Positions 23,056 through 61,095 of a stretch of DNA of 64,000 nucleotides are shown here, piece after piece; within the stretch, counting starts at the first letter, position 1; each line of letters starts with the position of its first letter. This stretch comes from Eutreptiella sp. 'Long Island Sound 2002' (lineage: Eukaryota; Protista; Euglenida). Location of the stretch: contig OZ038378.1 of assembly GCA_964036045.1 (NCBI GenBank), forward strand, positions 183,892,001 through 183,956,000, in the 5' to 3' direction. The translations under genes were made by a program, and so were the position numbers. Under the pieces are notes generated by a model that worked only from the letters and a program-made list of their open reading frames with translations, searched no databases and was not told the DNA's origin.

Positions 23056-47657
<24,602 letters not shown>

Positions 47658-48204
47658 CTGCAGGACGACGACAGGACGGGTCGGAATCAATGGGGAGCGG
47701 CGAAGTCGGGCTAGGCCTGTTGCAGGGGAAGGGGGTAAGGCGAGCCGCTCTCCTGAGCCGCCGTTGTCAGAAGGTTCTAGTCGCACATGTTGGTCAGCTC
47801 ATTGCGGCCCAGCCCCAGTCGGGGCCAGGGATGTGCTTATCCATGCGGGGGCGTGGGGGGGCGCGGGGGGCGGGGGGGATCTGGCGGACCCATCCACCCA
47901 AACCACCCATGCGCCCGAAACCAAAAAAGCGTTCCTCCAGGGAAAATGAAATTTTTGAATTGGGGGGCCAAAAATGAGAGGCCCCTTTCAGATACACAAC
48001 TTTTTTTTTTACAGTCATTACGCCCTCCCCCGCCCTCCCCCCTCCCGTCACGTAGGCCAAACACTGAGTACAACGCTGTCCGGGACCCAAACTGGCTCCT
48101 CAGAGCCGCGGAGGGCCCACCCTCATCCCACCCTTGCACAGGACCTCCTTCACAGCACGGAGCCTGGAGTGAGTATGCCGATTGGTACTTCCGGGCGTAC
48201 GTAG

Positions 48205-48316
48205 TTGGCGGTTGGTGGCGGTCGGCGGTTGGTGGCAGTTGGCGGCGGTTGGCAGTTGGCGGTTGGCGGTTGGTGGTTGGCGGTTGGTGGCGGTTGGTGG
48301 CGGTTGGCGGTTGGTG
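48205..48316. repeat. (GGCGGTT)n-type repeat
   Basis: Direct reading. Confidence 0.9.
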
Positions 48317-48785
48317 GTCCCTGGGGGTTATCCTCAAGGACTGTCCTTAACGAAAAAATTTGGGCTTCTTAAGGACACCCGTTTAAAAGCGTGGGGAGGA
48401 GGCCGGGGTTGTTTTGGGGGGGCGAGGGGGGGGGATGGAGTGGAGTGGAGTGGCTGCCGCATTCCACAAGTGCTAGACCCGTGGCGCCCGTAGGCTGGAG
48501 GCCATGGGCGGCAGTGGCGACCTGACACACTGTACGACAGGCGAAGAGCGGCCCGCCGTGGCGGTCCGGGGGATGTTCGGGCAAGGCACCCCTCGAAGCC
48601 GCGAAGCGGGGTGACCGGGCGTGCCGAACGGACACACCAGCAGCCACCGAGGGCAGGACCACATCGCGCGCGGGGGTACGGCGCGCGATTGTCCCTGGGC
48701 AAGCGCAGTACATGCACGGGGGGGCCGTCCCCTCGCTTTTAGACGCGACTCCCCCCCCCAGTAGAAGTGGGCCGAAGGCCCCTAG

Positions 48786-48816
<31 letters not shown>

Positions 48817-48962
48817 TTGGAGGGGGGTTCAGGGAGGGGCGATGGGGGGGGGGGAGGGCGGTCGGGAGGGTCAGTTGGGGGGGGGGTCCAGGTGGGGCGA
48901 TTTGGGGTGGTGAAGGGGGGGGAGGCTCCCATCACCTCCCCTTGCCCTCCCTCTGGGGTGAG

Positions 48963-48994
48963 AGCTAGGGCTAGGGCTAGGGCTAGGGTTAGGG
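48963..48994 (+). repeat. Interstitial telomere-like repeats (CTAGGG)4 TTAGGG
   Basis: ctagggctagggctagggctagggttaggg read directly. Confidence 0.85.
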
Positions 48995-51900
48995 TCACCG
49001 AGCTGGTGGAACCAGTCTTGGTTTTATAACCCTTTTTAGGGTCTAGGGTGGACCTACCAGGTTTAGCAGCAGCAGCAGCAAGCAGCAAGCAGCAAGCAGC
49101 AGCAAGCAACAAGCAGCACGCGCGAAATGGGTAAAAATCAGAATTCCGTCGTGGTGCTTCGGATTTGGCTGAAATTTTGGTGGATGATACCTATGGGTGT
49201 GAGGAACAACCCTACAAAGTATGAGCCAGAAACTCAACGGTGGCGGCCGGGAACGGGTGTCGCAAGTGGCGGACCTCAGTTTCAAAAACTACAGTTTAGG
49301 GCCAAAAACAGCCATTTTTGGGCCAAAAAAGCCCTAGAACCCATTCAAAACGGCCAAACAAAGGGAAACGGTGGGTACACTCCATGTGCGCCTTGACTTT
49401 CCCATGTCAACGAGCCCTTTGCGGCCCTCTAACTCCACCATATGTCCCGGAAACTGCCCAAAAAGGCCCCCAGAAGCCCCAAATTTTGTGCAGATTGGCG
49501 GGCAACAGCCACAAACCAAGAATAGGCCATATCTTTGGCTACATGGCTGAAAACGCGATTCCGAGGGCACCTAGTCCACCCGCAACCCCCCACTTTTTGT
49601 GGTTTCCACGCCTCAGAATTGCCCAAACGGACGCCTAGAACCCCGGTACCCAGGCCCACTAGGCTGCGGCAAGCTGCAAGCTCAAGCCCAAATAGGTGGG
49701 TGCCCAAATGGGTCAATATGGTCCAATGGGGCAGAAAAATGACTTTTCTCAAAAATGATCCTAGACCATGTGTGATGCTAAAGCAAGTGTTTTTGGACTA
49801 TTTTGAGCTTGTGGTGGCCCATTTTGGTCCTCCGAAAATCCCAAAATGCCTTGAAGATGCGCTGTTTTGGGACCAAAAATGGGTCAAAAATGGGTCAAAA
49901 ACGCATTTTTCCAAAACTCATCCCACACCATTTGGGGTGCACAAGCGGGTGAAATGAGCCCATTTTGAGCCCATTTTGGGGCATTTTGGCCCCTCACAAG
50001 TCCACAAAAGCCTTGAAAGTGGGCCTTGTGGTGAAGGGGATCACTTGCAAGCTGATTCCACTTTGTCAACGGCCTTCAATGTGTGACTCATTCTTGATGT
50101 CCCTCACCATTCATATCCAATGTTCCTTCCCCCACCAGCTCGGTCCCAACATTCAGTCTTGATTAGGGTCACCGAGCTGGTGGAACCAGTCTTGGTTGTA
50201 TAACCCTTTTTAGTGTCTAGGGTGGACCTACCAGGTTTAGCAGCAGCAGCAGCAAGCAGCAGCAAGCAGCAGCAAGCAGCAAGCAGCAGCACGCGCGAAA
50301 TGGGTAAAAATCAGATTTCCGTCGTGGTGCTTCAGATTCGGGTGAAATTTTGGTGGATGATACCTATGGGTGTGAAGTACAATCACACAAAGTTTGAGCA
50401 AGAAACTCAACGGTGGCGGCCGGGAACGGGATTCGCAAGTGGCGGACCTCAGTTTCAAAATCTGCAGTTTAGGGCCAAAAACAGCCATTTTTGGGCCAAA
50501 AATGCGCTGGAACACATTCAAAACGGCCAAACGAAGGGAAACGGTGGGTACACTGCACGTGCCTCTTGACTTCCCCGTGTCAACGAGCTCTTTGCGGCCC
50601 TCTAACTCCATGATATGTCCCGGAAGCGGCCCAAAAAGGCCCCAAGAAGCTCCAACTGCCAACAGCCACAAACCAAGAATAGGCCATATCTTTGGCTACA
50701 TGGCTCAAAATGTGATTCCGAGGGCACCTACTCCACCCGCAACCCCCCACTTTTTGTGGTTTCCACCCCTCAGAATTGCCCAAACGGACGCCTAGACCCC
50801 AATAACTAGGCCCACTAGGCTGTGGCAAGCTGCAAGCTCAAGCCCAAACAGGTGGGTACCCAAATGGGTCAACAGGGTCCGAAAGGGGTAAAAATGTGAC
50901 TTTCCGCAAAAATGATCCTAGACCATGTGCGACGCTAAAACAAGTGTTTTTAGAGTGTTTTGAGCTTGTGGTGGCCCATTTGGGTCCTCCAAAAATCCCA
51001 AAATGCCTTGAAGATGCGCTGTTTTGGGACCAAAAATGGGTCAAAAATGGGTCAAAAACGCATTTTTCCAAAACTCATTGTAGACCATTTGGGGTGCACA
51101 AAAGGGTGAAATGAGCCCATTTTGAGCCCATTTTGGGGCATTTTGGCCCCTGAGAAGTCCAAAAAGCCTTGAAAGTGGGCGTCGTGGTGATGGGGTTCAG
51201 GTGCATTTCACTTTGTCAAGAGCCATCAATGTGTGAATCATTCTTGATGTCCCTCACCATTCATATCTAATGTTCCCTCCCCCACCAGCTCGGTCCCAAT
51301 ATTCAGTCTTGATTAGGGTCACCGAGCTGGTGGAACCAGTCTTGGTTTTATAACCCTTTTTAGTGTCTAGGGTGGACCTACCAGGTTTAGCAGCAGCAGC
51401 AGCAAGCAGCAAGCAACAGCAGCAAGCAGCAAGCAGCACGCGCGAAATGGGTAAAAATCAGATTTCCGTCGTGGTGCTTCAGATTCGGGTGAAATTTTGG
51501 TGGATGATACCTATGGGTGTGAAGTACAATCACACGAAGTGTGAGCAAGAAACTCAACGGTGGCGGCCGGGAACGGGATTCGCAAGTGGCGGACCTCAGT
51601 TTCAAAATCTGCAGTTTAGGGCCAAAAACAGCCATTTTTGGGCCAAAAATGCGCTGGAACACATTCAAAACGGCCAAACGAAGGGAAACGGTGGGTACAC
51701 TGCACGTGCCTCTTGACTTCCCCGTGTCAACGAGCTCTTTGCGGCCTTTTTAGTGTCTAGGGTGGACCTACCAGGTTTAGCAGCAGCAGCAGCAAGCAGC
51801 AGCAAGCAGCAGCAAGCAGCAAGCAGCAGCACACGCGAAATGGGTAAAAATCAGAACTCCGTCGTGGTGCTTCAGATTCGGGTGAAATTTTGGTGGATGA

Positions 51901-54900
51901 TACCTATGGGTGTGAAGTACAATCACACAAAGTTTGAGCAAGAAACTCAGCGGTGGCGGCCGGGAACGGGATTTGCAAGTGGCGGACCTCGCTTTCAAAA
52001 ACTGCACTTTAGGGCCAAAAACAGCCATTTTTGGGCTTAAAAAGCCCTAGAACACATTCAAAACGGCCAAACGAAGGGAAACGGTGGCTACTCTGCACGT
52101 GCGGCTTGACTTCCCTGTGTCAACGAGCTCTTTGCCGCCCTCTAACTCCATGATATGTCTCGGAAACGGCCCAACAAGGCCCCCAGAAGCTTCAAATGCC
52201 GACAGCCACAAACCAAGAATAGGCCATATCTTTGGCTACATGGCTCAAAATGCGATTCCGAGGGCACCTACTCCACCCGCAACCCCCCACTTTTTGTGGT
52301 TTCCACCCCTTAGAATTGCCCAAACGGACACCTACACCCTCGTACTTAGGCCCACTAGGCTGCGGCAAGCTGCAAGCTCAAGCCCAAACAGGTGGGTGCC
52401 CAAATGGGTCATTAGGGTCCAGTAGGGGCAAAAAGATGACTTTTCTCAAAAATGATCCTAGACCATGTGCGACGCTAAAACAAGTGTTTTTGGACCATTT
52501 TGAGCTTGTGGTGGCACATTTTGGTCCTCCGAAAATCCTAAAATGCCTTGAAAAAAGGCTGTTTTGGGACCAAAAATGGGTCAAGAAAGGGTCAAAATCG
52601 CGTTTTTCCAAAAATCATCCTAGACCATTTGGGGTGCACAAACGGGTGAAATGAGCCCATTTTGAGCCCATTTTGGGGCATTTTGGCCCCTCAGAAGTCC
52701 AACAAAAGCCTTGAAAGTGGGCCTCGTGGTGATGGGGTTGACTTGCAAGCTGATTTCACTTTGTGAAGAGCCATCAATGTGTGAATCATTCTTGATGTCC
52801 TTCACCAGTCATAGCTAATGTTCCCTCCCCCACCAGCTCGGTCCCAATATTCAGTCTTGATTAGGGTTAGGGTCACCGAGCTGGTGGAACCAGTCTTGGT
52901 TTTATAACCCTTTTTAGTGTCTAGGGTGGACCTACCAGGTTTAGCAGCAAGCAACAGCAGCAAGCAGCAAGCAACAGCACGCGCGAAATGGGTAAAAATC
53001 AGAACTCCGTCGTGGTGCTTTGGATTTCAGTGAATTTTTGGTGGATGATACCTATGGGTGTGAAGTACAATCACACAAAGTTTGAGCCAGAAACTCAACG
53101 GTGGCGGCCAGGAACGGGATTCGCAAGTGGCGGGCCTCAGTTTCAAAAACTGCAGTTTAGGGCCAAAAACAGCCATTTTTGGGCCAAAAAAGCCCTGGAA
53201 CACATTCAAAACGGCCAAACGAAGGGAAACGGTGGCTACTCTGCACGTGCGGCTTGACTTCCCCGTGTCAACGAGCTCTTTGCGGCCCTCTAACTCCATG
53301 ATATGTCCCGGAAGCGGCCCAACAAGGCCCCCAGAAGCTTCAAATGCCAACAGCCACAAACCAAGAATAGGCCATATCTTTGGCTACATGGCTCAAAATG
53401 CGATTCCGAGGGCACCTACTCCACCCGCAACCCCCCACTTTTTGTGGTTTCCACCCCTCAGAATTGCCCAAACGGACGCCTAGACCCCAATAACTAGGCC
53501 CACTCGGCTGTGGCAAGCTGCAAGCTCAAGCCCAAACAGGTGGGTGCCCAAATGGGTCAACAAGGTCCAATAGGGGCAAAAAGATGACTTTTCTCAAAAA
53601 TGATCCTAGACCATGTGCGATGCTAAAACAAGTGTTTTTGGACCGTTTTGATGTGGTGGTGGCACATTTTGGTCCTCCGAAAATCCTAAAATGCCTTGAA
53701 AAAAGGCTGTTTTGGGACCAAAAATGGGTCAAAAATGGGTCAAAAACGCATTTTTCCAAAAATCATCCTAGACCATTTGGGGTGCACAAACGGGTGAAAT
53801 GAGCCCATTTTGAGCCCATTTTGGGGCATTTTGGCCCCTCAGAAGTCCAAAAAGCCTTGAAAGTGGGCCTCATGGTGATGGGGTTCACTTGCAAGCTGAT
53901 TTCACTTTGTCAAGAGCCATCAATGTGTGAATCATTCTTGATGTCCTTCACCAATCATAGCTGATGTTCCCTCCCCCACCAGCTCGGTCCCAATATTCAG
54001 TCTTGATTAGGGTTAGGGTCACCGAGCTGGTGGAACCAGTCTTGGTTTTATAACCCTTTTTAGGGTCTAGGGTGGACCTACCAGGTTTAGCAGCAGCAGC
54101 AGCAGCAGCAGCAAGCAGCAAGCAGCACGCGCGAAATGGGTAAAAATCAGAACTCCGTCGTGGTGCTTCGGATTCGGCTGAAATTTTGGTGGATGATACC
54201 TATGGGTGTGAGGGACAACCACACAAAGTATGAGCCAGAAACTCAACGGTGGCGGCCGGGAACGGGTGTCGCAAGTGGCGGACCTCAGTTTCAAAAACTG
54301 CAGTTTAGGGCCAAAAACAGCCATTTTTGGGCCAAAAAAGCCCTAGAACCCATTCAAAACGGCCAAACAAAGGGAAAGTGTGGGTACACTCCATGTGCGG
54401 CTTGACTTTCCCATGTCTACGAGCCCTTTGCGGCCCTCTAACTCCACCATATGTCCCGGAAACCGCCCAAAAAGGCCCCCAAAAGGCCCAAATTTTGTGC
54501 AGATTGGCTGGCGACAGCCACAAACCAAGAATAGGCCATATCTTTGGCTACATGGCTGAAAATGCGATTCCGAGGGCACCTAGCCCACCCGCAACCGCCC
54601 ACGTTATGTGGTTTCCACGCCTCAAAATTGCCCAAACGGACACCTAGACCCCAATACCTAGGCCCACTAGGCTGCGGCAAGCTGCAAGCTCAAGCCCAAA
54701 CAGGTGGGTGCCCAAATGGGTCAATATGGTCCAATGGGGCAGAAAAATGACTTTTCTCAAAAATGATCCTAGACCATGTGTGATGCTAAAGCAAGTGTTT
54801 TTGGACTGTTTTGAGCTTGTGGTGGCCCATTTTGGTCCTCCGAAAATCCCAAAATGCCTTGAAGATGCGCTGTTTTGGGACCAAAAATGGGTCAAAAACG

Positions 54901-55200
54901 CATTTTTCCAAAACTCATCCCACACCATTTGGGGTGCACAAACGGGTGAAATGAGCCCATTTTGAGCCCACTTTGGGGCATTTTGGCCCCTCACAAGTCC
55001 ACAAAAGCCTTGAAAGTGGGCCTTGTGGTGAAGGGGATCACTTGCAAGCTGATTCCACTTTGTCAACGGCCTTCAATGTGTGACTCATTGGTGTCCCTCA
55101 CCATTCATATCTAATGTTCCTTCCCCCACCAGCTCGGTCCCAATATTCAGTCTTGATTAGGGTTAGGTGTAGGGTTAGGAGCAGGATGAGGGTTGGGGTG
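48963..55200 (+). repeat. Tandem array of ~5.4 copies of a ~1.15-kb unit punctuated by TTAGGG
   Basis: The marker AGGGTCACCGAGCTGGTGG occurs at 48991, 50165, 51315, 52869 and 54015. Copy 3 is truncated and fused at ~51747 to copy 4, which lacks its first ~45 bp. A (GCAGCAA)n tract lies near each unit start. Confidence 0.97.
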
Positions 55201-55215
55201 GGCGTTAGAGTCAAG
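55157..55215 (+). repeat. Degenerate interstitial telomere-like repeats
   Basis: ttagggttaggtgtagggttaggagcaggatgagggttggggtg... Confidence 0.75.
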
Positions 55216-55613
55216 GTTGGGTTCAAGTATAGCGTTGGGGTGCTCCACCGCCTGAGCGGGGAGGGATGCTACGTGGGCAAGGGGAATGAAAAAAAATTTT
55301 CGGGCGCCTTCGGCGCCACCCTATGTATGGCTAGTAGCCATTGACCCTTGGTAACTAAGTGGGCCCGGAGGGCCCGGAGGGGGGGGGGGGGGGGGGAGTC
55401 GCGTACCGGGACCGAGGAGACGGCCCCCCCGTGGGTACATGCAGTGCAGTGTGAGGCAGGCGGGACCACCCCGCGAAAACTGGGCCCAACGGCCAGTTGT
55501 GACCTGAATACTGGGGGTTATCCTACCTTGACAATCCTGAATCCAGCGGCATCGGTCCCAGCACCCCAACGTGACCCCTCTGCCCCCGACCCAAGGAATA
55601 CACAGAGAGAATC

Positions 55614-55840
55614 CTATAATCCATCATCTACGTCCCAGTGATTGAATACCACCTTCAATGCGATTGTTGCCTGAAGAAGTAACCCAAGAGAGACCTTGCG
55701 CACATCGCCCACGACGTACAGCTTGTCCGCCTCGACAATGTGCTTTGTCACGGGCTCGTGGAAGGGCAGCGCCAGATCTCGTGCATGGTGCAGCAGCATG
55801 GAAGTGTCCACGGAGAGTTTCAGGTCCGCACGCATGTTCT
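55614..55840 (-). CDS. UBL-domain gene, terminal exon (...FNHWDVDDGL*)
   Basis: 227 nt; phase matches; TAG at 55616-55614. Confidence 0.7.
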
Positions 55841-58284
55841 CTGTGGGATGTGGTGTAGGACCGTGGTCGGGTGGTGTCTGTCGCACCGTGCGCTGCACTG
55901 CGCACGCGTGAGGCACCCTCGGAGGTTCAGATCCCAATGCAGGAGAGTTTGAAGCACACACAAACACTGGCCATCCTGCACAATGGGGAACGTGGAAGGC
56001 ACAGGTGCATGTTGGACGCCGTCGGATGTGCAGAGTACTGGACGGCTCACAGGGCCTATACGCATGCCATGGAACAGGGCTTGGGGAGGCTCCCCGGGGT
56101 GCATTATCCAACGAAACGTGAAATGTAACGTGAAACGTGAAAGCCTGAAACAGAGCAACACAGGGGTCCCCCGTCAGGGGGGGGGGGGGGTCAGAGATGT
56201 CTTTAGGGACGGATAATCCGTCGTAAATCCATCGTCAAAATTTTCAAATCCATCGCAAATCCACTGTAAGTAATCCAGGATACCACTTGCCACCAGATCC
56301 CTACACTGAATTTACTTCAATCCTACGGTCTCCTTGGCATGGTGGACCAACTGAGCCCGGTGTCCAAAAGGCATGTCATATCTTTGGAAAGCTTCCGGCC
56401 GAAGCAAGGTGATGGCACGAACACTGCCAAAGCTATCCGACTTCAGCTTGTCACAGTACTTTTTGACTGAATTAGGAGCAGATGCCCAAACGCAATCCCA
56501 CAGATGGTCCACCGGTGCTGAGGTTGCAACCACTGGTCCTTCAGGTGTATCAAGAGGTGCCTGTGGCACGGGTTGTTGTTTACCTTGCGCCAATGATGTT
56601 GCAACAGTTGTGGCGCGTTACTCACCACCATCAGCAAAAAAAAGTGCTTCATACATGGGTGGCAGCAGCCAAAACAACTGAGCAGGGAGACAGGCCCTGC
56701 AACGAGATCTTTGGGGGCTGGGACTGAAGGGGAACTCAGGGGGAACTGCAAGTTACCTACAGCGTGCAAAAAGTCGTGGGCAGAAGCTTCACAGCATGCA
56801 AAAAAGGCAATAGTGTGGGGCAGGGGTATGTGTCAGAGAGGCTTATCCGTCGCAAATCCATCGTCAAAATGGTCAAATCCATTGCAAATCCACCGTCAAC
56901 CCCCCAAATATCCACCGCTAATGACAACTCTGGGGGCTGGAATATGCAAACCGGTGCCTCCAAGTCTGCAATGTAAATACACAGAGTTATGCAAAATTAT
57001 GCAACATTACGCAGGTGAAAAAAATGCAAAAAAATGGCAGAGCAATGCACAACACCCGGGGGTCAAAAATTCCAGCCATACCCGTGATGCAGGTGGTTTG
57101 GCCCCACAGTTCCACTTTGACTTCTTTTTCTCTTGTCCATCAGTTCATCCTCATCCACAATTGGCCGTGTCATCTGGTTCCTCATCACTGTCACCATAAT
57201 CAAACTCAGGAACGTCGTCATCATCAAAACGACAGGCAGAGCACTGCACGATACCCTGGGCTCAGAAGTACTTTTACTTCCTTTACTCTGGTCCATCAGC
57301 ACAACTGTCACCCTCGTCCACAATAGGCCAATTCATCCGGTCCCTCATCACTGTCACTATCATCAAATTCAGCAAGGTCGTCATCATCAAGCTCATCTGA
57401 TGCTGCCTAAGTGCCAACCAGTGGCAAAAGTATGCAACTTATCCAAAGCCCCAATGTGCAAAATTATGCAAAGTTATGCATTTGCACAATTGCCCCACGC
57501 CCCTGCCTCATACTCCAACCACTGGCCAGAATTGGCAGCACCAAGAACTGCAGGGATACTTTTTCAAGCGCCATACACCCCTGAGGGCTGATATGTGCCT
57601 ATACGTGCCCATGTGTGTACCCCAATTGTGCCTAACTACCTGCTACCTACCTAAAATGTGTCTAACCAACCCTAACCCCGAACCCGGGGGCCCAAAATGT
57701 AGAACAATGATGTGGCTACAGGCAGCCATGAACAAAAATGTCCTTTGTGGACTCCTGAGGCCGGTACCTAAAACTGACTGTGGCCAGAGGCCCCCCTTGC
57801 GCAGAGGGGAGGGGTTGACACTTGGCGTCCTGGGACCGGTAGAGCCGCCCCGCCCGTGCACACCAAATAACAAGGCGTACCTTGAATCCTGTTGACCAGC
57901 GTGTGCACGGTCCATGAGGGATCCACTTCCACCTCTTGGTCAGCGCATTGGACTGGCAAATCCACACAGTTGTGGAACGCCACAGTCACTTTGCAGGACG
58001 CCATGGCTGTAAATAGGGCAAAGGCAGCAGGGTGAATGGGTAATGGCACAGGCACGGGCCCATAAACCTGCCAGGCCAGTTTGGCCAGAGTAGAGGTTTC
58101 TGGACTCAAGGTCTCTTCAGGCTGTGAGGCCGGGGGGGAGGTGTGGGCCACGAACTCAAGCTGCAGCTTCTTCGGCCTATCCCTGTGCCGCATCCAGGAA
58201 CTGGTTTTGGCCTTGGCATCCGTCAGCTTCAGCACCACAGGGGTTTCCACTTCCAAGCGTGGTATGGCCAAATAGCAGCCATCC
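55614..58284 (-). CDS. 3' part of a gene encoding a protein with a C-terminal ubiquitin-like (beta-grasp) domain; exons 58284-57881 and 55840-55614; tentative upstream exons 59270-59209 and ~61290-61120
   Basis: The spliced product KVTVAF...DQEVEVDPSWTVHTLVNRIQ|ENMRADLKLSVDTSMLLHHARDLALPFHEPVTKHIVEADKLYVV follows the ubiquitin-fold pattern. Phase-1 GT-AG intron 55841-57880 (G|gtacgc ... cccacag|AG). Confidence 0.65.
56312..56593 (-). CDS. SAM (sterile alpha motif)-like ORF inside the last intron of the UBL gene; no ATG start
   Basis: SVKKYCDKLKSDSFGSVRAITLLRPEAFQRYDMPFGHRAQLVHHAKE matches the SAM pattern Y...F....I......L..L...dL...GI..GHR..I; flanked by ~55-bp direct repeats. Confidence 0.45.
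   Translation of the reverse strand: MAQGKQQPVPQAPLDTPEGPVVATSAPVDHLWDCVWASAPNSVKKYCDKLKSDSFGSVRAITLLRPEAFQRYDMPFGHRAQLVHHAKETVGLK
57130..57392. repeat. Diverged ~158-bp tandem duplication encoding acidic peptides on the minus strand
   Basis: DDDDVPEFDYGDSDEEPD and DDDDLAEFDDSDSDEGPD, both interrupted by stops or frameshifts. Confidence 0.7.
57881..58284 (-). CDS. UBL-domain gene, penultimate exon
   Basis: 404 nt; tgtag|G acceptor; within ORF 57768..58271. Confidence 0.7.
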
Positions 58285-60152: not shown

Positions 60153-61095
60153 CCGGTCCTGATGCGACATACCCCCCAGCTATCTGTCAAAACCCGGGGG
60201 GGGGGGGGGGGCTGCGGGGGGGGCTGTTTGGGGGGGGTCGGCTGGAGGGTGTAGGGGGGGGGGCGGGGGGGGGGGGGGTTCCCAAGGTGGGGGGGCTTGC
60301 GCGCGACCCACTACTACCACATGCATACCCCGAGGGGGGATGTGTGTCTGGGGGTTTGGGGGTACGGAGGAATGTATGCGATAATAGCGCTTTCTCGTCA
60401 TTGCCGAGAAGTAAGTCTTAAGGGTCGCCGTGTTGCCCTCCTCCCCCCTCCCCCCATTCCCCCTTCCCCCTCCCCCGCTATTCCCCCACGCCCCCCGGTT
60501 AGTTTGTGAGAAAAATTCCTGAGGCTTGGTTAGAGTTGGGGGTTAAAAGAAACAATGGATGGACTTAGAGGCTTAGAGGTCCTTGAAAAGCTCCCCCAAC
60601 TCAAGGGGCCACGCAACAAAGCGTGGATTGTGAGTCCCTAACCCCAACTCAAGGGGCCACGCAATAAAGCGTGGGAAAAAATAGAAACAAGAAAGAAAGA
60701 AAGAAAGAAAGAACGCAGTGTGTTCGCCCCAGGAAGAATTTGGCGCTGCACTCGGGCCGGGGTTTGGCTCCCAATGGAGGATCTTCACTTCGCAACAAAT
60801 GACATTTGTATAGCGGCCCGTCTTGCTAATCTCCGCTGGAAGCACCTCGCAACAAACGACTTTTGTATAGCGCCTCGTCTTGCGATATCTGGCGCTCAAA
60901 AGCACTGATGGTTTGATGAAACGGAAGCATACACTAAAAAAGGGGGCCGCCGTTGGCGCCATGCGAAAAAAAGGGGGCGCCGTTGGTGCCATGCAAAAAA
61001 AAAGGGGGCGCCATTGGTGCCATGCCCCCAATCCACTATCTCTCAAAACCCGGGGGGGGGGGGGGGGGCTGGGGGGTGTCGCATACAAGGACCGG
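60153..61095. mobile_element. MITE-like element with imperfect TIRs and internal tandem repeats
   Basis: CCGGTCCTGATGCGACATACCCCCC versus reverse complement CCGGTCCTTGTATGCGACACCCCCC; internal 2x ~33-bp, 2x ~60-bp and 3x ~30-bp repeats; no TSD seen. Confidence 0.45.

Follow-up and report, generated by a model that had tools for sequence, protein, structure and literature searches.

A non-coding element dispersed through a euglenid genome inserts at one position of telomere-type hexamers and has ends like those of Helitron2/Helentron transposons

We examined a 64,000-nucleotide stretch of DNA, referred to here as the window, from the euglenid Eutreptiella sp. 'Long Island Sound 2002'. The window corresponds to C1:183,892,001-183,956,000, where C1 (OZ038378.1) is a contig of 200,966,160 bp in an assembly of 2.28 Gb (GCA_964036045.1). 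Between positions 48995 and 55156 it holds five head-to-tail units of about 1134 bp each with one or two TTAGGG hexamers between them, as seen in the sequence itself, in a repeat map, and in a BLAST map made with unit 4 as the query. The array lies within a telomere-like tract that belongs to another transposon, the carrier, whose arms are listed further below. The units, their spacers and the remainders of the tract are as follows (window positions).

48965-48994, plus strand: left remainder of the carrier's telomere-like tract, (CTAGGG)4 TTAGGG.
48995-50162, plus strand: unit 1, 1168 bp, of an older subfamily; 89.5 per cent identity to unit 4 (BLAST).
50163-50168: single TTAGGG spacer between units 1 and 2.
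50169-51312, plus strand: unit 2, 1144 bp.
51313-51318: single TTAGGG spacer between units 2 and 3.
51319-52860, plus strand: unit 3, 1542 bp, with an internal tandem duplication of positions ~37-415.
52861-52872: (TTAGGG)2 spacer between units 3 and 4.
52873-54006, plus strand: unit 4, 1134 bp, of a younger subfamily than units 1 and 5; the query unit.
54007-54018: (TTAGGG)2 spacer between units 4 and 5.
54019-55156, plus strand: unit 5, 1138 bp, of the older subfamily and sister of unit 1.
55157-55180, plus strand: right remainder of the carrier's tract, TTAGGG TTAGGT GTAGGG TTAGGA; arrays in other copies of the carrier are followed by these degenerate hexamers too.

Each unit junction reads ...CAGTCTTGA-(TTAGGG)1-2-TCACCGAGC..., and TTAGGG dimers are present above chance (five matches against 0.30 expected, a number reached in none of 100 shuffles). 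Unit 3 is longer than the others because positions ~37-415 are duplicated: Tandem Repeats Finder (TRF) reports 51355-52139 as two copies with a period of 393 and 93 per cent matches, and BLAST aligns the unit to unit 4 in two segments, 1-415 and 37-1134. The unit interior contains an (AGC)n microsatellite and two to three diverged copies of a repeat of ~160 bp. Open reading frames (ORFs) of 110-144 aa occur in the units, though they are not conserved from one unit to another, and the seven unit ORFs searched gave no Pfam match. There was likewise no Rfam match at E<=1 across 47.5-57 kb of the window, and a structured RNA or ribozyme was rejected on this result. CCCTAA repeats make up the first 2.3 kb of contig C2 and more than 3 kb at the start of C4, which identifies TTAGGG as the true telomere repeat of the organism and the site in the window as internal. 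An initial reading made from the letters of the window alone (the sequence-only reading) had described the same junctions and flanking hexamers, and these agree with the sequence and with the repeat and BLAST maps. It had also judged, correctly, that the site is not terminal, as the window lies within C1, and that the units hold no credible ORF.

The unit is a dispersed mobile element present in about 7,000-7,600 copies on all large chromosomes, and not a local duplication. With unit 4 as the query, matches of 93-98 per cent identity were found on more than twenty contigs, solo as well as in arrays, including copies of 97-98 per cent identity on C26, C11, C10, C5, C8 and others. We aligned forty-seven full units from the window and thirty loci (unit 3 was omitted owing to its duplication), and in this alignment copies on different chromosomes were 99.1-99.7 per cent identical. 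The first 100 matches on C1 are evenly spaced over its first 27 Mb, with no enrichment at the chromosome end, and no unit is present in the fetched parts (first 3 kb) of the two telomere tracts examined, those of C2 and C4. The contig starts of C1 and C3 are not telomeric. The array is not a displaced chromosome end.

These results separate the two proposals of the sequence-only reading, which had seen in the units either a non-autonomous element that targets or regenerates TTAGGG or a subtelomeric satellite moved inward. Targeting is upheld by thousands of dispersed copies beside telomere-type hexamers, at one position and in one orientation, and the same copies remove two objections that had been foreseen, namely a lack of association with TTAGGG and a unique local duplication. 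The satellite proposal falls on the even spread along C1, on the lack of units in the fetched telomere tracts, and on the finding that a unit usually resembles copies on other chromosomes more closely than its neighbours; the enrichment at chromosome ends that had been suggested as a check fails on the first two of these.

Exact-pattern counts over the genome, which also gave the copy number, define the position of the unit. Its 3' end followed by TTAGG occurs 6441 times, against zero occurrences of a control pattern. The next base after the 3' end is T in 7085 cases and another base in forty-eight (over 99 per cent T; about 90 per cent TTAGG), and 98 of the 100 matches listed for the 3' end before T continue as TT. 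At the 5' end, RGGG precedes the unit 7102 times (about 93 per cent) and a non-G base 427 times, with AGGG in 97 of the 100 matches listed for RGGG. The 5'-flank exceptions that we sampled are mostly mutated G's. Hexamers bound the unit in all thirty loci, among them six in which the flanks are unique, non-repeat and outside any carrier (L011, L016, L017, L019, L024, L028). Three off-target insertions were found at T-runs inside other units, and none of the sampled copies is opposite in orientation to the hexamers. The unit thus inserts one-way and without a scar between GGG and the next NTAGGG on the G-rich strand.

The limits of the element can be read from a copy on C8 (L009), where a further unit is found not in the hexamer tract but within a carrier arm of native sequence GGTTGGGTTTAAGG. 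The junctions are GGTTGGG^TCACC...CTTGA^TTTAAGG, so the unit brings no hexamer with it, makes no target-site duplication (TSD) and deletes nothing. In addition, the sampled non-T 3' flanks are the first base of GTAGGG, CTAGGG or ATAGGG variants. As the flanking base tracks the hexamer variant, it must be part of the target, which leaves TCACC...CTTGA as the exact element. The idea that the element regenerates TTAGGG does not hold, given the lack of a hexamer at either end of the L009 copy and a 3' base that varies with the hexamer variant.

This exactness bears on one rival explanation, in which the unit would be a retroelement resembling a short interspersed nuclear element (SINE), copied by target-primed reverse transcription with the enzyme of a TRAS/SART-like long interspersed nuclear element (LINE) or a Penelope-like element that anneals to G-strand ends. 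Insertion that is orientation-specific relative to the G strand would fit such an origin, as would several partial copies that retain position 1. However, both ends are exact in thousands of copies, with no tail, TSD or target deletion, and the partial copies that we inspected do not form a graded series of truncations but go back to deletions, rearrangements, nested insertions, gaps in the assembly or sibling families. The lack of a ribozyme or other Rfam match and of any unit in the fetched parts of the two true telomere tracts examined also speaks against it, and we consider a SINE-like origin very unlikely. Like the unit, TRAS/SART of Bombyx and MoTeR of Magnaporthe insert into telomeric repeats in a sequence- and orientation-specific manner and form head-to-tail arrays, but they are LINEs that encode an endonuclease/reverse transcriptase (RT), carry a 3' tail and are often truncated at the 5' end. 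The unit shows none of these traits. Two other candidates were set aside: telomere-capped linear DNA is ruled out by the same polarity of both flanks, and retrohoming of a group II intron by the wrong ends and the lack of an Rfam match.

The unit runs from 5'-TCACCGAGC... to ...CAGTCTTGA-3', starting with 5'-TC and ending in CTTGA. Its ends are related by a 13-nt inverted repeat, in which positions 2-14 (CACCGAGCTGGTG) pair with positions 1104-1116, leaving 18 nt to the 3' end. The 5' repeat is followed by a hairpin (AACCA-GTCT-TGGTT, 5-bp stem; the first 60 nt fold with z -2.3), and the 3' tip, TCA-GTCT-TGA, has the same GTCT loop on a 3-bp stem. A single-stranded junction made of the 3' end, two hexamers and the 5' end folds at -27.2 kcal/mol (z -4.8), and none of 200 shuffles was as good. 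The 5' end contains the C-strand telomere heptamer TAACCCT at positions 33-39 and CTAGGGT at positions 48-54.

An older sibling family with a length of 1.43 kb (L042:1602-3032, or C18:30013401-30014831; also in L041 and L039) can be compared with the young unit family. The two are 79 per cent identical overall, with 96 per cent in the first 50 nt, 91 per cent in the last 34 nt, and 40-86 per cent in the interior. Ends that are kept far better than the interior are the pattern expected of cis-acting ends. Copies of the sibling family are 85-89 per cent alike and share the 5' end of the unit, while their 3' tip is different (...ATTCAATCCTGG). The sibling family is also found in telomere-type hexamers, and a first look gave 6929 candidates.

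In structure, the unit ends look like those of Helitron2/Helentron-type rolling-circle elements, for which hallmarks have been published together with those of the HINE and DINE-1 elements (PMC4067079; PMC5148889). Like these, the unit is non-coding, has sharp ends and makes no TSD. It also shares with HINE/DINE-1 a 5' terminal repeat paired with a subterminal 3' repeat (12-15 nt in published cases, also given as 12-16), a 5' hairpin, an internal microsatellite, tandem repeats, very high copy number, and occasional T-rich targets. Other features differ. The unit is strictly specific for GGG^NTAGGG rather than the TT or T-rich targets preferred by Helitron2/Helentron elements (PMC5148889; PMC4067079), its 3' repeat is only 18 nt from the end (~20-60 nt in the published families), and its 3' hairpin is weak. 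A canonical Helitron (Helitron1: 5'-TC, 3'-CTRR with a hairpin 10-12 nt upstream, A/T insertion) is excluded by the CTTGA end and the G/N(T) site. Among the known systems to which the array had initially been likened, Helentron/HINE elements fit the end structure better than TRAS/SART or MoTeR, and TATE of Leishmania shares the target position. Overall, we think it rather likely that the unit is a non-coding, non-autonomous DNA transposon of the Helitron2/Helentron type that targets telomere-type hexamers and uses the carrier tract as a landing pad.

Transposases of this kind are available in the genome. A profile search with PF14214 identified 863 Helitron Rep candidates; the 150 scored were all significant, and many candidates lie within intact ORFs of 1,400-2,600 aa. 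We looked for an autonomous partner of the unit with negative-pattern searches, in which an element end is kept and the adjoining interior is forced to differ. A family passes or fails such a search as a whole, and a blank is therefore weak evidence; the partner searches covered a fraction of the sites. Four of them returned 26, 6, 15 and 2 matches, and those inspected were deletion variants, nested insertions and sibling families. Natural variants of the TAACCCT "guide" gave only two matches. Two apparent partners were rejected on inspection: at C1:26.06 Mb, two 3' ends separated by 15 kb proved to belong to two separate arrays, and a sibling unit 14 kb from a RepHel match on C18 is a complete independent unit in a carrier.

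Several points weigh against a Helitron2/Helentron assignment, which draws on end structure and insertion behaviour only. No autonomous element with the unit termini was found in the negative-pattern searches or among twelve fetched loci, including L036-L042 and L064-L066. One of these, L036, is the region preceding a RepHel ORF within a cluster of tandem Helitrons; it contains neither TTAGGG nor any similarity to the unit (blastn, nhmmer); its genome-wide matches are gene-like modules with no unit-like ends. The fold of the last 60 nt is non-significant (z -0.8), the 3' end is CTTGA and not the canonical CTRR, and the base flanking the 5' end is G, so that the TT rule of Helentrons is not literally followed. 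Finally, scarless insertion at a non-telomeric site comes from one clear case, the L009 copy, together with the flank variants.

RepHel ORFs of 1,100-2,000 aa were also seen in clusters with a spacing of 12-28 kb (C11:29.05-29.24 Mb, C6:9.795-9.821 Mb, C2:71.50-71.56 Mb, C9:69.22-69.27 Mb, C1:30.55-30.93 Mb). The C6 cluster includes two copies 13,124 bp apart that are 99 per cent identical. A module of ~995 bp from upstream of the C6 RepHel ORF occurs in tandem, with a period of 1107 bp, near several clusters (e.g. C1:30873893-30877101).

The position of the insertion within the hexamer raises a second rival, that the unit descends, as a non-autonomous form, from a TATE/VIPER-like tyrosine-recombinase (YR) retrotransposon whose circular DNA copy was recombined site-specifically into a hexamer. 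TATE of Leishmania braziliensis, also a member of Euglenozoa, forms tandem clusters at the same GGG^TTA position (PMC6681497), a feature that the unit shares. Inverted repeats flank the would-be circle junction, and matches to the integrase profile PF00589 are plentiful in the genome. Yet the L009 insertion has no duplicated core, at most one base is common to the joined ends and the target, and the hexamer variants in the 3' flanks follow the target. The terminal/subterminal inverted repeat is asymmetric and starts with TC, which does not match the split direct repeats of such elements, and off-target insertions occur at T-runs. TATE itself is a telomeric retrotransposon of several kb with RT and tyrosine recombinase, whereas the unit has no coding remnant (neither RT nor YR in the Pfam search) and no duplicated recombination core. 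A partner search with PF00589 returned only integrase islands and likely contaminant contigs, and the strong matches lie in large islands unrelated to the unit. A TATE-like origin is therefore unlikely in our view.

The PF00589 matches number more than 100, nearly all in intact ORFs of 250-730 aa, and are clustered in a few islands of 100-500 kb: C16:21.80-22.29 Mb, C25:20.65-20.97 Mb, C22:19.45-19.53 Mb, C23:11.93-11.99 Mb, C8:24.39-24.48 Mb, C11:43.27-43.35 Mb, C14:33.57-33.70 Mb and C19:15.04-15.12 Mb. They recur on several chromosomes with identical scores; large islands that have been duplicated or are mobile would be one possibility, integrated virus-like DNA another.

The landing pad that we propose for a Helitron2/Helentron-type unit is supplied in the window by the carrier. 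The whole array is nested in this small cut-and-paste transposon, which has terminal inverted repeats (TIRs) and an 8-bp TSD, a nesting absent from the sequence-only reading. Its parts in the window, apart from the tract given above, are the following.

48707-48714, no strand: left copy of the carrier TSD, AGTACATG, 7/8 identical to the right copy.
48715-48962, plus strand: left arm, G-rich, with the TIR at 48715-48735; more than 35 genomic copies align exactly.
55181-55433, plus strand: right arm, 253 bp, with the TIR at 55413-55433; more than 30 genomic copies, 95-98 per cent identical, have the same limits.
55434-55441, no strand: right copy of the carrier TSD, GGTACATG.

The two TIRs are 21 nt long and 95 per cent complementary. 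An empty carrier of ~615 bp (L043, C1:4163144-4163758) has a perfect 8-bp TSD, CTCCCATC, and holds sixteen uninterrupted YTAGGG hexamers at the place of the array in the window. Genome-wide, the distance between paired carrier arms ranges from ~105 bp to more than 16 kb, with between zero and more than ten units held. Judging by its TIRs and 8-bp TSD, the carrier would fit a hAT-like miniature inverted-repeat transposable element (MITE). It is not the only host of this kind, as at least two other host repeats have hexamer tracts. Carriers on C10 and C26 have old-subfamily units beside their right arms that are 99 per cent identical to each other, which indicates that carriers have moved with resident units aboard.

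The flanks of the carrier in the window (47400-48714 and 55444-55880) match a paralogous locus, C10:13175229-13178401, at 80-86 per cent identity, with a 181-bp piece (window 48534-48714) on the opposite strand. From the alignment, this C10 locus (13.175-13.178 Mb) appears to lack the carrier and would be a possible empty site.

Comparisons among units bear on how the arrays arose. The nearest relative of a unit is in its own array for only seven of the thirty-five units of multi-unit arrays. In the window, units 1 and 5 are 97.1 per cent alike and ~91 per cent identical to units 2 and 4. The closest relative of unit 2 is L017 on another chromosome (96.7 per cent, vs 94.1 per cent inside the array), and unit 4 also finds its best match elsewhere (97.5 vs 94.1 per cent). 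These identities suggest that arrays grow mainly by separate insertions; in the window, the older outer units 1 and 5 probably came first, with units 2-4 added later in the hexamers between them. A different pattern is seen in locally amplified, almost exactly periodic arrays of eight to ten units on C1: C1:22172826-22183296 (1161 bp, ten times), C1:14122407-14133027 (period ~1177-1181 bp, ten times) and C1:27993150-28002527 (~1165-1177 bp, each unit preceded by A rather than G). Unlike the insertion-built array of the window, these indicate local amplification or multi-unit mobilisation.

Local amplification is central to a third rival, in which the units are an internal macrosatellite of the TIR carrier that changes by unequal crossing-over and spreads only with the carrier. 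Most sampled copies do lie inside carriers, of two or three types, which hold from none to more than ten units, and exactly periodic arrays (1161 bp x10 at C1:22.17 Mb; ~1178 bp x10 at C1:14.12 Mb) show that amplification takes place. Nonetheless, this rival is contradicted by the six loci with unique, non-carrier flanks (L011, L016, L017, L019, L024, L028), by the L009 unit in a carrier arm outside the tract, and by units inside other units. A unit has usually diverged further from its neighbours than from copies on other chromosomes, and empty carriers keep an uninterrupted hexamer tract. We find the macrosatellite explanation highly improbable.

For a rolling-circle unit, the observed target rule, exact ends, end structure and independent insertions can be combined into a mechanism, in which the enzyme, the circle and the role of TAACCCT in target alignment are what we take to be most likely. 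A RepHel (HUH-Y2) transposase from one of the many Helitrons in the genome would nick both ends of the unit, and the top strand would be freed as a single-stranded circle. The circle would then be joined into single-stranded G-strand hexamers, where the C-strand-like TAACCCT in the 5' end may help to align the target. Each insertion would leave intact hexamers on both sides, so that new copies land beside old ones in the same direction, giving head-to-tail arrays with variable hexamer spacers. The carrier transposes independently and takes its resident units along.

A more speculative version, which we hold to be rather unlikely, places the choice of target in the DNA of the element itself. 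The conserved motif TAACCCT (33-39), possibly together with CCCAAT close to the 3' end, would pair with single-stranded G-strand hexamers and redirect an ordinary Helitron RepHel, and together with a MITE that multiplies the landing pads this would form a self-reinforcing two-transposon system. If so, the guide and MITE would seed interstitial telomere-like tracts across the 2.3-Gb genome while the true telomeres are spared. Bacterial elements of the IS200/IS605 group (e.g. IS608) have subterminal hairpins and insert scarlessly and one-way, 3' of a short specific single-stranded sequence. Guynet et al. (2009) are reported to have found that their target is recognised through pairing with a guide sequence at the end of the element. 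These elements use a Y1 HUH transposase, and the guide of the unit, TAACCCT at 33-39, is only a putative one.

Transposons specific for telomere repeats are already known and, since 2026, so are telomere-targeting Helitrons. The latter, telomere-capping Helitrons of Paramecium aurelia, have telomeric repeats of one polarity on both sides, outside the element, and an absolute orientation to the repeat strand, from which the authors inferred strand-specific integration; ORF-less derivatives exist (PMC13085455). The unit resembles them in its single orientation between same-polarity hexamers. It differs from the Paramecium elements, which have ORFs of 9-10 kb and satellites, occur at chromosome ends only and use the C-rich strand, in being 1.1 kb long, non-coding, on the G-rich strand, and almost entirely at interstitial hexamer tracts, many of them supplied by another transposon. 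We found no paper on such a telomere-repeat-targeting element in euglenids, and the unit belongs to a known class of transposons, within which its target specificity is unusual.

Transposons that insert at specific sites reveal how mobile DNA reaches places where it can settle safely. Until now, specificity for telomere repeats was known mainly from retroelements, to which large Helitrons at the chromosome ends of ciliates have been added very recently. The case in Eutreptiella differs in that a small non-coding element with rolling-circle-type ends has near-absolute specificity for one phosphodiester bond of TTAGGG and acts at thousands of interstitial sites, and in that its target is provided and spread by a second transposon. 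How HUH/Helitron transposases choose their targets can be studied here in a natural system, in which the more interesting question is how the GGG^NTAGGG bond is recognised. The element also helps to explain the origin of interstitial telomeric sequences and long-period tandem arrays, as well as the way in which nested transposons shape a very large protist genome. For annotation, it accounts for thousands of 1.1-kb arrays interspersed with TTAGGG, which might otherwise be taken for telomeres that were misassembled.

Two minor observations concern other repeats beside units or carriers. At L064 (C1:180991500-180992700) a unit is broken after position 27 by an unrelated insertion of ~780 bp, beyond which positions 22-27 are repeated; this interruption is a nested insertion of another element with a ~6-bp duplication. 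A short motif, CTCAAGGGGCCAC..., followed by a small palindrome (GCCACGCAA.AAAGCGTGG), is present twice in window 60590-60680, adjoining a CCCTAACCCC stretch. A diverged form of the motif (CTCAAGGGGCCACACCGAAGGGTGG) lies beside the empty carrier at C1:4.16 Mb (L043:1-40), and the motif may be part of another small repeat family.

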